Source: Entomortierella parvispora E1425 (lineage: Eukaryota > Fungi > Mortierellomycota). From it: 64,000 nt of DNA. Of this stretch, positions 56,747 to 60,527 are shown piece after piece (the stretch's first letter is position 1; each line of letters opens with the position of its first letter). Both the position numbers and the translations under genes were made by a program. Where the stretch lies: contig BQFW01000002.1 in NCBI GenBank assembly GCA_020891255.1, positions 1,674,001-1,738,000 of the forward strand, given 5' to 3'. The notes beneath the pieces were generated by a model, which saw nothing but the letters and a program-made list of their open reading frames with translations, ran no database searches and was not told the origin of the DNA.

Positions 56747-59700
56747 CTACCCCACGACGCCCAACATCCAGAATGGAGGTACTCCAGTGTCGGGTAATGC
56801 TCCCCCAAGGGAATCTTTCAGTCCCTGGTCGTCTTTGGCCAGGACCTCAAAAACATTGGCCTCCAAGCCAAGATCGCCCCACTCCAGCATGCCCTCATTG
56901 GCAGGGTTGTAGGGCCTAGAGTCGTCGCTCTTCCGGCCACTGTTTGTTGTGGTTGCGGAAGCATCGTCGAGAGTCAAAAGCCGTCTAGGAGGAGCGTGAT
57001 CGTATGCTGTGCGCGCAGTGTAAAGAAGAGCATCCATAGTCACCTTGCGATGGCCAGAGGATCGGTAATGGCTTTGACGCACATAGTTTCGAACGATATC
57101 TCCAAGACGGTATCCGCGCTTTGATCGATGTCTCCACAGATCAGGAGCAGACTCCATGCCGGCATTGTTCACCATCCGGGTCAAGAGTGTCCAGTACTGC
57201 AAGTTCAATGTAGAGTAACGCTCCGCCAACTCTGAAGCAGAGAACATGGGCTCTGCACCATCGGGTACCATTGGCGGTGTCGAAGACGCCTCATTTGGTG
57301 CTTGGCGTGCACCCGAGTCTGTTTGTGCCGCCATGCCCTGTCGAGGAGTTTTACGACGGAACTCGTCCTCATCTTCGGAGGGGGTTTCGGCCTGGCTATC
57401 ATACGATGGAATCGAGCCTGTGTTTGACATCCCGGCGTCCTTCATCATTCCACCGAGATCCTTGGGCCTGCTAATCGACTGATCCAGACTCAAATCCAAC
57501 TCGTCGGTTTCTTCGTCGAGATACATGCCAGCCAATTCCTGACCAGACACATCCGCCGCAGATCCTCCTGGTTGCAAAAGGCCAGCCATTGATTGACGTG
57601 TTGCAAATGCATTTTCGAATGGCATCTTGATCTTTCCATCCTGGATCACCATAAACTGTCTTCCGACTCGCATGCGGCATCGATTGACTACTCTCAAGAA
57701 CAATCGAACGTCGTCTGTGATGGCGGCCAGGGCAGCAACATGGAGGTCCATGAAGGACGATCGGTGGTCTCCCTGTTTAGCGTAGGTGATGCCTTCAGGA
57801 GAGTTGACAAGATGTTCCAGCCAGGTTGAAAAGACCAAGTTCAATTGAATGTACTCGTTCTGTGTCAGCACATGGATTCTGTGCAACATCCTTACGGCAT
57901 CCAAAAAGGCAGGCATAGTGTCGGCCTTCAAGAGATCCTTTGGAATCGAAAGCAATGGGCGAGCACTGAGGGCGCCTTCCTTCTTTGGGATAACTCTAGG
58001 CAGGCGATTGAGTGCAGGGAAGGAGTATCCATGGTCCAGCAAGTATCCCGCATCTTCAGTCGTAGGATGGTTAGCGACGTGTTGGTCGTGCTCCTGAAGC
58101 AATGTCGTACGAACAATGTTGGCGGCTGCTCGAGCAAATGTTTCGTTTCCAGTGAAATAGTGGGCCAAAGTGAGAGTAGTGACTTCGTTGTAGAGCCCCT
58201 GCAAGGTAATGACTTTGGAAGCTCCGTCTCCGCTGACAAGAACAGGGGATGAAGGTGGAATCATTGGCTTTCCCTGGTTGTCGGCTGGGAAAAGGAACAA
58301 GTCTTCAGCAGAAGCCTTCTTCAAAAGGTTGACACGCGTCGACAAGACCTGGCACGCCTTTGACTGAAGCTCCTGTACCATATGTGTGACGCCAGACTCG
58401 CCAACCCAGTACTTTTGGCGATTGGACATGAGAACATCGTCCTTATACACTAGTAAGTCGTGCGACCTAAAGGTCTTGCGTGCAATTCTCTCGTCAATAC
58501 CATCAATGAGATCCTGAATGGCCAGAAGGCGGTTGTAGGCACGAATCGCAGCCGACTGACGAGTGTTCTCTTCTTGCGATCTCTTGCCTGAAAACAGACG
58601 GAAGACCCAGCCTACAGTTATAAAGTCTGCCTTGGCGGGTGTTGGATCACGCTCCTTTGGTTCCCAAGAAACCGATGGTTTGCTGATTTTACCACGCTCC
58701 AATGCTCCTAACCGCCAGAGAAGCTCCAGCTATAGTATAAACGGAATGATATGTTAGCAAACGAAAAAAAAATGCCCTTAAAATGGATGCTCATCGTCAA
58801 GGGGAGGGAAGACGCCATGTGAAAAGAATGAGGGCTCACCTTGGACCGCCGACCATATCGCATGTCGGGGTTGTAGACGTCATCGGCATCATTTCTGAAG
58901 ATGATCTGGGGCTCCTCTTTGGAGTCGGGACGGGTGTCGACGCCCTTGAGCAGCTGCGAGTTGTCGACCAGGCGAGCCATGGGCACCACAAAGTACTTGA
59001 CAGCCTCGCCGTGGTCCTGGATGGCTTGCTTGATCTCTGACATGGCATTCTTGGTCATGAACGAATTGCCATCGAAGGCGAAAATCCAGCGAGCGTCGAC
59101 TTGAGTCTTTCCATGGTTGATGGCGATATTTCGGCCGCCGTTCTAAATGATCAAAGAGAGAATAAAGAGGGGTCAGTTTCTGAGCTAAATGTGACTATGA
59201 CGGAGACTGAGGCTGTGCTCTTTCCTATCTCCCATTTTTGGGAAACAGTGGCAAAATCAAGTATGTAAAAACACCGCCTCCTTTTTCTAGTCTGCCCACA
59301 GCACCCAAAGGCGCAACGCAGTCGTCCTTGAGGGCTTACATTGTTCATTGCATAACGGTTCTTGTCGTGGTAGGTGTAGTCCAGCACACGGAGCTTGGCC
59401 ACTTTGGAGAACGTAGAGTAATCGTCTGAAGAGAAGAAGTCGGGTTCTGGAAAGTCTTCGAGTTTAAAGTCTTGCTTGAGGTAGTCCTTTTCTACAAAAG
59501 GGATGCGGATGTACTCTTGGCGATGGTGATCCAGTAGCTGGAGGATCGAGGACTCGGCCTGCTGGTCCACGATGCGGTTGAGGACCCAAAGCTTGCGGGT
59601 CTTATTGAACTCGGGCTCGTGCTCAAGAATGAAGCGCACATTCGATAGGGTTTGACCAGGTCGATGACGAGGGGGCAGATCATTGCCCAAAATGCGATAT

Positions 59701-60527
59701 AGCACAATCGACTCTGGGTCGACGGTCCCTTTGATCGCCGAATGGCCCCCTTCACTGCCCACTGGTGTCGAGTCACCGTCGTTCGAGTCGTCTAGCTGAG
59801 TGTTTCGGTCACCCGGGGCCTGCCAAGGATCATTGGCTGGCGGGTGGGCTTTTTGCCGCTCCCGCTCCTGTGCTTGCTGCCGGGTCTTGTCCAGAGGATA
59901 ATCAAAGTCGTACCGGTACCTGTCATGGTTGGTGCTCTGGTGATGGCGCACATCGTCCACCCGTCGATCTGTCCAGAATGGCAGTGAGGGCTGGAGGTAG
60001 ACCAGCGAGAAGAGTGCAATGACGAGCAAGAATGTGAGTGACCCAAGTCCTTTCCGGGTCCAGAGCCGCCTCCTGAGGGATCGTAACCTCGAAGAGGAAG
60101 GGCCATTGGGGTAGTAAATGAACTGCTTGTCGACCAAGGCCGAGGGCAGATCACTTTGGGTGCTGCTGTTGCTAAGGGAATGATGGTGCCTGGAGGACTG
60201 ACCCTGCGTCAGATCTCCATGGGTCGGGTGGTGGGACCGAACTCCGTTGACGAGTGCAGCAGCAGAGGCAGCAACAGAGGCCAAGGTCGAGGGCCGAACT
60301 GCCGCACTATTTGAGGCCGAGTAATAACTGCTACTACTGCTGAGGCTGTTGGCGTTTGGGCTGGAGGAAAGATGCATGTTTGGGTTGGTGGGATGGTTGC
60401 TCCTCCGGGAATAAGGCGGTGGGTCCTGAGGATGGACCATGCCCGGGAAGAGCGGAGGAGGGGAGGGAGAGGTGGATCTGGAGGACGCTGCCGATGAGCG
60501 ATAGAAAGCTCTATTGGGAGTGCTCAT
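56747..60527 (-). CDS. Type II membrane protein, ~1157 aa: GT-A-like domain fused to an alginate-lyase-like (alpha/alpha) domain
   Basis: Exons 60527-59340, 59142-58840 and 58729-56747. Single TM (GLGSLTFLLVIALFSLVYL). YRILGNDLPPRH, WVLNRIVD, MNNNGGRN, WIFAFDGN, EEPQIIFR. C-terminal LTLAHYFTGNETFARAAANIVRT and WLEHLVNSPEG...DHRSSFMDLHVAALA. Confidence 0.8.

Follow-up and report, generated by a model that had tools for sequence, protein, structure and literature searches.

The minus-strand gene at positions 56747-60527 of the DNA analysed here, a 64,000-nucleotide stretch of contig BQFW01000002.1 from the fungus Entomortierella parvispora E1425 (hereafter the window), consists of three exons and comprises 1157 codons plus stop. 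Structure prediction indicates that its product is a fusion of a glycosyltransferase (GT) domain of the GT-A fold with a domain derived from polysaccharide lyase family 38 (PL38) that appears dead as a lyase, and that it belongs to a large, undescribed family. We tentatively favour the view that the protein is a glycosyltransferase of the Golgi, that it acts on a glycan containing uronate and that the dead lyase domain serves to hold this acceptor. An earlier sequence-only reading of the gene had connected it with the walls of Mucoromycota; our comparisons show that many bacteria have the same two-domain protein and that the family is not specific to this phylum.

The transferase-like and lyase-derived domains

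The first of the two globular domains (N-domain) is predicted to fold as a GT2-like GT-A domain, based on its modelled structure and the position of its motifs. The corresponding features are:

58466..59714, minus strand, both introns included: GT-A-fold domain (residues ~222-535 of the public protein P0001)
59664..59687, minus strand: GNDLPPRH loop after strand beta1
59142-59128, minus strand: NGGRN; in the model, NNNGGRN begins the helix preceding strand 161-166
59065..59076, minus strand: FDGN; lies where DxD is canonically found, at the C-terminus of strand beta4; D-G invariant, N nearly so

The AlphaFold model of this domain, made with a 40-sequence alignment, has a predicted local distance difference test score (pLDDT) of 82 and a predicted template modelling score (pTM) of 0.82. 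All 29 Foldseek matches at E≤1e-3 are GT-A glycosyltransferases. VIA re-alignment to the chondroitin polymerase K4CP gave Z 15.1 over 188 residues at 3.1 Å, while CHSY3, RmlT, WrtF, TarP, TarS and the glucuronyltransferase domain of LARGE1 scored Z 13-14.4. Altogether, 604 of the 998 re-aligned chains reached Z≥8; among the entries listed, all are GT-A enzymes except 3D5N, an uncharacterised Sulfolobus protein. In the ESM Atlas, the model matches bacterial fused homologues with a template modelling (TM) score of 0.89. The D-G-N motif closes strand 161-166 (WIFAFD) in the model. The sequence-only reading had proposed a GT-A-like domain from these short motifs, and the model bears this out: at Z ~15, NGGRN and FDGN occupy the canonical NxxRN and DxD positions, and AlphaFold and Foldseek returned a GT-A fold.

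No significant match of the N-domain was found in Pfam, NCBIfam, PHROGs or the PDB sequences. The best Pfam candidates, PF00535 (Glycos_transf_2; 14.8 bits, cutoff 23.3) and PF13896 (Glyco_transf_49; 13.6 bits, cutoff 27), each appear in three of the 40 members below threshold, and both span exactly the stretch from NGGRN to FDGN. The exons were searched separately, with the public protein P0001 representing the spliced product. A weak Pfam GT2 match was also seen for exon 2 (profile positions 64-113), and single-sequence searches of exons 1 and 3 against the PDB sequences gave no match. An hhalign comparison of the N-domain profile with one bona fide GT2 sequence returned a probability of 0.06. 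Judged against Pfam, NCBIfam, PHROGs and the PDB sequences, the N-domain family thus appears so far undescribed.

This family is very well conserved. The N-domain is 58-63% identical across the Mucoromycota subphyla and ~40% identical to its bacterial counterparts, with ~45 invariant residues. NGGRN and FDGN are invariant or nearly so in 40 fungal and 22 bacterial or other sequences, far beyond chance, and within GNDLPPRH bacteria and fungi invariantly share G, N, D, L, the second P and H, and almost invariantly the R. This loop, a helical insert and a conserved C-terminal extension (RYGRRxK, GWVxRLxSG) are features not seen in GT2. Such conservation bears on the idea that the protein is a pseudo-enzyme with two inert domains that serves the secretory pathway as a scaffold or lectin-like receptor. 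The non-canonical DGN in place of DxD and the lack of any GT family at threshold would agree with this idea, but the invariant residues are concentrated at the GT-A active-site loops, a constraint typical of enzymes, and the stand-alone copies of bacteria lie within clusters for glycan synthesis; we regard it as scarcely credible.

The second domain (C-domain) was recognised by the sequence-only reading as Alginate_lyase-like but degenerate, and both parts of that description hold. Its features are:

56750..58465, minus strand: degenerate PL38-like (alpha/alpha) toroid
57761..57769, minus strand: D768-H769-R770, at the position of N241-N242-H243 (NNH) of PL38 in two independent alignments
57668..57685, minus strand: NRCRMR, a family-specific conserved patch; N796, R799 and R801 invariant in fungi
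57275..57574, minus strand: disordered acidic/Ser-rich insert of ~100 amino acids (pLDDT <50), between the former QPxELxR and HY elements
57215..57220, minus strand: R951-Y952, equivalents of H297-Y298 of the PL38 lyase BoPL38

Exon 3 matches Pfam Alginate_lyase (PF05426) with 37.6 bits, above the threshold of 22.2. A profile of the fungal C-domains finds the PL38 structure 3NFV at E 9e-15, and a family profile that includes the bacterial relatives reaches E 5e-76 to 3NFV and 9e-65 to BoPL38. In the C-domain model, the core is predicted well and several loops are disordered. VIA re-alignment to 3NNB/3NFV gave Z 26.5 over 315 residues at 3.0 Å, followed by BoPL38 (Z 24.0), PL17 (22), PL5 (20) and dermatan sulfate epimerase (16.3). 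PL38, which the sequence-only reading had named as one candidate for structural comparison, is thus the closest family, ahead of the other three.

The mechanism of BoPL38 is known from structures, simulation and mutants: Y298, the base/acid, and H243, the base for anti-elimination, take the C5 proton, N242, Q173 and R292 hold the +1 uronate, E236 tunes H243, H297 aids binding, and the tunnel roof includes Y91 and D108 (bioRxiv 10.1101/2024.12.11.627697). We mapped these residues onto the fungal protein via a profile alignment including the bacterial relatives and via the multiple alignment:

Y91 and D108: within the segment deleted in fungi
Q173: Gly here; column unconserved in fungi
E236: Tyr here; Leu in most fungi
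N241-N242-H243: D768-H769-R770 here
R292: F822 here; column unconserved in fungi; the ~100-residue disordered insert follows
H297: Arg here (R951)
Y298: Y952 here, retained

Of the nine BoPL38 residues with a functional test, only Y298 is retained; its equivalent is a Tyr in 35 of the 40 fungal sequences, and the H297 column holds His in 26 and Arg in 10 of them. The tunnel-roof segment (PAPYWWP...RDG) is deleted in all aligned Mucoromycota and Basidiobolus sequences and present in most bacterial homologues and in Ichthyophonus, whereas the disordered insert is absent from the bacterial homologues and shorter in other fungi. The NNH motif, R292, Q173 and the roof are therefore all lost. The sequence-only reading had placed GDH at the NNH position; the loss itself stands, but the register was one residue off, and the true equivalent is DHR. 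In BoPL38, the substitutions D108N, Q173N/L, N242A/D and H243N abolish activity, and R292 was likewise tested as essential (bioRxiv 10.1101/2024.12.11.627697). Because these inactivating positions are lost, the canonical lyase reaction appears very unlikely in the fungal C-domain.

Loss of the ancestral reaction leaves the alternative that the C-domain has been retooled, with D-H-R and H/R-Y forming a new site that abstracts the C5 proton of a uronate, so that the protein would combine a transferase with a C5-epimerase or non-canonical lyase acting on a wall glycuronan. D768, H769 and R770 are conserved in 38, 36 and 39 of the 40 fungal sequences, respectively, and together with Y952 and NRxRMR (35-40 of 40) this exceeds what a scaffold needs. 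Moreover, BoPL38 has a side activity as mannuronate-to-guluronate epimerase via its Tyr/His pair (bioRxiv 10.1101/2024.12.11.627697), and dermatan sulfate epimerase has the same fold. Against this, R292, which distorts the +1 sugar, N242 and Q173, which bind the carboxylate, and Y91 and D108 of the roof are missing or replaced, and the BoPL38 variants N242D/A and Q173N/L lose lyase and epimerase activity alike (bioRxiv 10.1101/2024.12.11.627697). The domain has also decayed much further in related fungi such as Rozella and the rusts. On balance, we consider a retooled site quite unlikely.

A comparison of both domains suggests where selection acts. C-domain identity is ~32% within fungi and further reduced in Rozella, the aphelid Paraphelidium and rusts; given the far higher identity of the N-domain, selection acts mainly on the transferase-like part.

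Gene structure and membrane topology

The coding region was delimited by open reading frames (ORFs), splice sites, the exon junctions of P0001 and the N-termini of orthologues, and the splice sites are based on the public model and on conservation. Both introns have GT..AG ends:

56747..60527, minus strand: whole coding region
59340..60527, minus strand: exon 1, 396 codons; cytosolic tail, transmembrane helix, stem and first half of the GT-A-like domain
59143..59339, minus strand: intron 1, GTAAGC...TTTAG; interrupts the NNN/GGRN motif
58840..59142, minus strand: exon 2, 101 codons; NGGRN helix, FDGN strand end, VPMxR, EEPQIIF and RYGRRSK
58730..58839, minus strand: intron 2, GTGAGC...CTATAG
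56747..58729, minus strand: exon 3, 660 codons plus stop; end of the N-domain, linker helix and PL38-like domain

P0001 is EMPS_01419 of E. parvispora, a protein of 1107 amino acids that a word search found to be 100% identical to exon 3, and its sequence spans both exon junctions exactly as placed here. The public model begins 50 codons downstream of the first ATG. As the 50 residues upstream of its Met are conserved in five other Mortierellaceae orthologues, the true start is most probably the ATG at 60527, the very coordinate at which the sequence-only reading had ended the gene; the public model EMPS_01419 would then start 50 codons too late and lack the part encoded at 60378-60527 (minus strand).

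The N-terminal portion of the product has the following layout:

60051..60527, minus strand: cytosolic N-terminal tail, Ser/Pro-rich, with an Arg-rich end before the transmembrane helix
59982..60050, minus strand: single transmembrane helix (signal anchor), residues 160-182 of the 1157-residue product
59715..59981, minus strand: luminal stem of ~90 residues, low complexity, unconserved in the alignment and with pLDDT <50 at its end

The helix is the top 19-residue hydropathy window of the protein and its sole strongly hydrophobic stretch, with six Arg/Lys on its N-side and a net acidic C-side, and an equivalent helix in the same layout is found in the Mucor and Basidiobolus orthologues. At the level of sequence, these features confirm the type II topology that had been proposed, with a cytosolic tail, one signal-anchor helix, a stem and two luminal domains. 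This layout matches the architecture of type II Golgi glycosyltransferases, in which an N-terminal tail and one signal anchor are followed by a stem and a luminal catalytic-type domain. The cytosolic tail contains a conserved PPPY motif at 60422-60411 (minus strand); motifs of the PPPY type are bound by Rsp5/Nedd4-type ubiquitin ligases in cytosolic tails of Golgi and endosomal membrane proteins.

The surroundings of the gene can be described briefly. Downstream, at ~55840-56460 (minus strand), lies a small intron-containing histone-fold gene with Pfam matches of the TFIID 20 kDa/TAF12-like type (locus L075). Upstream, ~3 kb (60530-63500) are without a convincing ORF. The plus strand is strongly skewed at 60250-61000 (GC skew up to +0.43, AT skew +0.39); this is a long C/T-rich tract on the strand of the gene and probably its promoter or 5' untranslated region.

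Family distribution and bacterial gene neighbourhoods

A profile search with the N-domain retrieved 362 proteins and a region search with the full-length protein 457. The fungal members cover all three Mucoromycota subphyla, where every sampled genome has one, as well as Basidiobolus, the chytrid Lobulomyces, Rozella, an aphelid and two Pucciniomycotina; none from Ascomycota or Agaricomycotina is among the matches listed. Mucorales have two paralogues. Non-fungal eukaryotic carriers are an ichthyosporean and bdelloid rotifers. In bacteria, the N-domain occurs alone (300-420 amino acids), is followed by the same lyase-type domain (630-730 amino acids), or is fused to GT2 or GT-B domains. A literature search found no functional study of the protein family.

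In a maximum-likelihood tree of 96 N-domains, 28 of the 29 eukaryotic sequences form one clade (Shimodaira-Hasegawa-like approximate likelihood ratio test, SH-aLRT, 86), with Ichthyophonus sitting beside it, and the branching of the fungi follows their accepted phylogeny. A recent transfer of the fungal gene from bacteria was rejected on these grounds, and the gene is old in fungi and vertically inherited. Within the fungal clade also fall the N-domain-bearing rotifer proteins P0100 and P0170 (Adineta vaga and A. ricciae; 326-408 amino acids), which could reflect either acquisition from a fungus or contamination. The ESM Atlas also contains a cluster of 274-residue hypothetical proteins, mostly of tailed phages, that closely resemble the N-domain model (TM 0.70/0.86, 261 residues, 2.3 Å), while PHROGs holds no model matching the family. 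Papers on the mating locus of Mucorales name an 'alginate lyase (agl)' gene adjoining sexP/sexM, tptA and rnhA; the three family members whose loci were examined (Mucor lusitanicus, M. saturninus and Rhizopus arrhizus) do not lie beside HMG, tptA or rnhA genes, and agl is thus only a possible member of this family.

The bacterial members are informative about the lyase-derived domain. The roof segment is intact in most bacterial fused copies and in Ichthyophonus, as are NNH, the Arg and the His-Tyr pair. In the alignment of fused proteins, seven non-fungal sequences have no roof segment, and NNH is lost in all seven. Since roof and NNH disappear together, the lyase function has been given up repeatedly with the domain being kept, which argues that the C-domain is retained for a role other than cleavage. 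Most bacterial copies start no more than ~40 residues from strand beta1, leaving no room for a signal peptide, so their lyase-type site should work in the cytoplasm beside the transferase.

We called and clustered the ORFs of 67 bacterial loci. They often contain at least two copies of the family; an ATP-binding cassette (ABC) exporter with fused transmembrane and nucleotide-binding domains (TMD-NBD) is nearby in 17 of them and a GT-B-type partner in 16. A Neobacillus sp. locus (L001:1-18000) has a stand-alone N-domain gene among GT8, GT4 and GT2 genes, the Desmonostoc homologue has an O-FucT neighbour, and a homologue on a metagenomic contig has DUF6492 and GT1 neighbours. A Halomonas cluster combines a gene of the UDP-glucose/GDP-mannose dehydrogenase family with pyruvyl- and acyl-transferase genes and GT4/GT2 genes. 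This context places the family in polysaccharide synthesis, but by itself is no proof of a uronate product, as the dehydrogenase-family gene occurs in only two loci.

Several further arrangements were seen in these loci. In Rhodobacterales, proteins of ~1540 amino acids join the N-domain to a complete Alginate_lyase domain (E 2e-78) and a GT-B-like tail (L008:9275-13909; likewise L007, L011, L013, L015, L017, L022-L024, L026, L035 and L039); each is preceded by a ~715-residue paralogue, and the GT-B-like part is common to both. In Rhizobiaceae and Roseobacteraceae, a stand-alone N-domain gene (354-364 amino acids) directly follows a TMD-NBD ABC exporter gene (L052:7972-10927; L053, L055, L057 and L046). 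The Neobacillus locus also contains one nucleotidyl-transferase-like and one Mur-ligase-like gene together with eight ATP-grasp genes (seven of the YheCD type, one of the TupA type), and looks like a locus for a spore-surface or teichuronopeptide-type glycopolymer.

These neighbourhoods bear directly on the alternative of a glycosyltransferase with a non-uronate acceptor, i.e., a glycoprotein, a glycolipid or a neutral glycan, in which the lyase-derived domain would be a structural or oligomerisation module. Sugar specificity is not readable from sequence, 65 of the 67 neighbourhoods lack a uronate-forming dehydrogenase gene, and the C-domain is poorly conserved and repeatedly degraded; in addition, the fungal spread of the family (Mucoromycota, Basidiobolus, Pucciniomycotina and a chytrid) resembles that reported for fucose-handling enzymes. 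Yet the PL38-type fusion is old and persists in bacteria and fungi alike, the catalytic residues of this enzyme class, which acts on uronates only, are all present in most bacterial copies, and a patch of the fungal C-domain is invariant. We thus judge a non-uronate acceptor unlikely.

Candidate function and comparison with known systems

The mechanism that we propose for the Golgi glycosyltransferase introduced at the outset is as follows. The type II protein would reside in the secretory pathway, probably in the Golgi, with both globular domains facing the lumen. The N-domain would be the working enzyme, a GT2-like GT-A glycosyltransferase in which the GNDLPPRH loop, the NNNGGRN helix and the end of the FDGN strand presumably make up the nucleotide sugar site, and which would transfer the sugar to a glycan. 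The C-domain derives from a PL38 lyase, the ancestral and bacterial forms of which, with their full beta-elimination machinery, would handle a hexuronate-containing chain. Indeed, beta-elimination of the PL type needs a C5 carboxylate, so the ancestral partner domain must have handled such a chain. In the fungal protein this machinery is gone while the fold and a new conserved patch remain, and the C-domain most likely only binds and positions an acidic, glucuronate-containing acceptor chain for the transferase. A link to uronate polymers is indirectly supported by the complete PL38 catalytic sets in bacteria and by the dehydrogenase gene in a bacterial cluster.

Biochemical precedents come from Mucor, whose membranes contain a Mn-dependent glucuronosyltransferase and a fucosyltransferase that is activated by polyglucuronate (mucoric acid) and also uses it as acceptor; neither activity is given a gene in the review describing them (PMC6433966). 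A transferase with a polyuronate-binding module would fit the polyglucuronate-activated fucosyltransferase particularly well, which we put forward as a hypothesis. The suggestion of the sequence-only reading that the protein could be a polyuronate synthase is no more than plausible. In its specific form, a processive polyglucuronate (mucoric acid) synthase whose GT-A domain polymerises UDP-glucuronic acid (UDP-GlcA) in the Golgi lumen, it can draw on the top structural neighbours, among which are luminal or soluble enzymes that polymerise chains containing uronate (K4CP, CHSY3-CHPF, heparosan synthase 2 and the GlcA-transferase domain of LARGE1), and on the GlcA-transferase activity of Mucor membranes, for which the review gives no gene (PMC6433966). 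The fold gives no donor specificity, however, and equally good matches use GDP-Fuc, dTDP-Rha or UDP-GlcNAc; the protein has a single transferase domain only, and the family is often found in bacteria with loci that lack a UDP-glucose dehydrogenase gene and is also present in fungi not known to make polyglucuronate. This specific form therefore carries little probability.

Several observations weigh against our proposal of a Golgi transferase with an acceptor-holding lyase domain. Membership of the N-domain in any GT family was not found at the sequence level by Pfam, hhalign or a PDB profile search, and D-G-N is not a standard DxD, which makes metal and donor binding uncertain. The fungal C-domain conserves D-H-R, H/R-Y and NRxRMR and could be catalytic rather than binding. 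Only 2 of the 67 bacterial loci have a UDP-glucose/GDP-mannose dehydrogenase-family gene near the homologue. Wall uronates are documented for Mucorales and not for Mortierellomycotina; the walls of Mortierellomycotina and Glomeromycotina are described in the literature as chemically understudied, too little known for a phyletic comparison of the family with wall glucuronan. Expression data were sought for the gene, and no RNA run was found.

A broader scenario would make the N-domain the founder of a new glycosyltransferase family. Its bacterial ancestor would have been a cytoplasmic bifunctional protein, transferase and PL38 lyase or epimerase in one, building uronate polymers for export by ABC transporters, and its descendant in Mucoromycota would make or decorate the wall glycuronans mucoran and mucoric acid with the dead lyase as polyuronate clamp. 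We consider this scenario unlikely in its entirety. The family deserves attention for the following reasons. For the glucuronate-rich wall polymers of Mucorales, the review describes transferase activities and gives no gene for them (PMC6433966). With a transferase fold and a second domain whose ancestor was a uronate-specific lyase, the protein offers a concrete candidate gene for glycuronan biosynthesis in early-diverging fungi. Mucorales are the agents of mucormycosis. Beyond fungi, a large GT-A family present in bacteria, fungi and possibly phages is without a Pfam or NCBIfam model, and the recurrent transferase-lyase fusion implies the puzzling arrangement of a cytoplasmic lyase beside a synthase. 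The substrate of the family could readily be approached through bacterial members in which the lyase site is intact, such as the 750-residue Halomonas protein of locus L043 with its NNH/R/HY set.

Among known systems, the membrane-bound glucuronosyl- and fucosyltransferases of Mucor have mucoran and mucoric acid as their substrates, and divalent metal stimulates them (PMC6433966); they are known biochemically and without sequence, and their link to the fungal gene is hypothetical. The N-domain shares with GT2-like GT-A enzymes (K4CP, CHSY3-CHPF, heparosan synthase 2 and the GT49 domain of LARGE1) the Rossmann-like core and, after an NxxRN-type helix, a strand with an acidic motif at its end; the animal enzymes have the same type II Golgi architecture. 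It differs from them by an identity of 6-15%, the lack of any family hidden Markov model at threshold, D-G-N for DxD, a helical insert that separates beta3 from the NxxRN helix, and its unique invariant GNDLPPRH loop.

Similar to the PL38 lyases BoPL38 (PDB 8BDQ) and BACOVA_01668 (PDB 3NFV/3NNB), the C-domain forms a toroid that aligns across the whole lyase (~315 residues), with detectable sequence kinship and the equivalent of the catalytic Y298. In contrast to them, it has DHR for NNH, a deleted roof, no conservation of Q173, E236 and R292 and a ~100-residue insert in the active-site region, and it follows a GT-A domain in a fusion protein with its anchor in a eukaryotic membrane. With dermatan sulfate epimerase 1 (PDB 6HZN) it shares the toroid, a luminal location in the secretory pathway and a conserved Tyr with nearby His/Arg; unlike in the lyase-fold C5-epimerases, the substrate-distorting and carboxylate-binding residues are absent.

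The closest relatives are bacterial. The 'alginate lyase family proteins' of 630-730 amino acids (e.g., Desmonostoc P0133 and Halomonas sp. A29, locus L043) are true homologues with the same domain order, and neither they nor the stand-alone forms of 300-420 amino acids have a described function in the libraries searched. Unlike the fungal protein, most of them have no membrane anchor or signal peptide and keep the lyase catalytic set, and they are found in glycan-synthesis clusters, often beside an ABC exporter, some being fused to GT-B or GT2/tetratricopeptide repeat modules.

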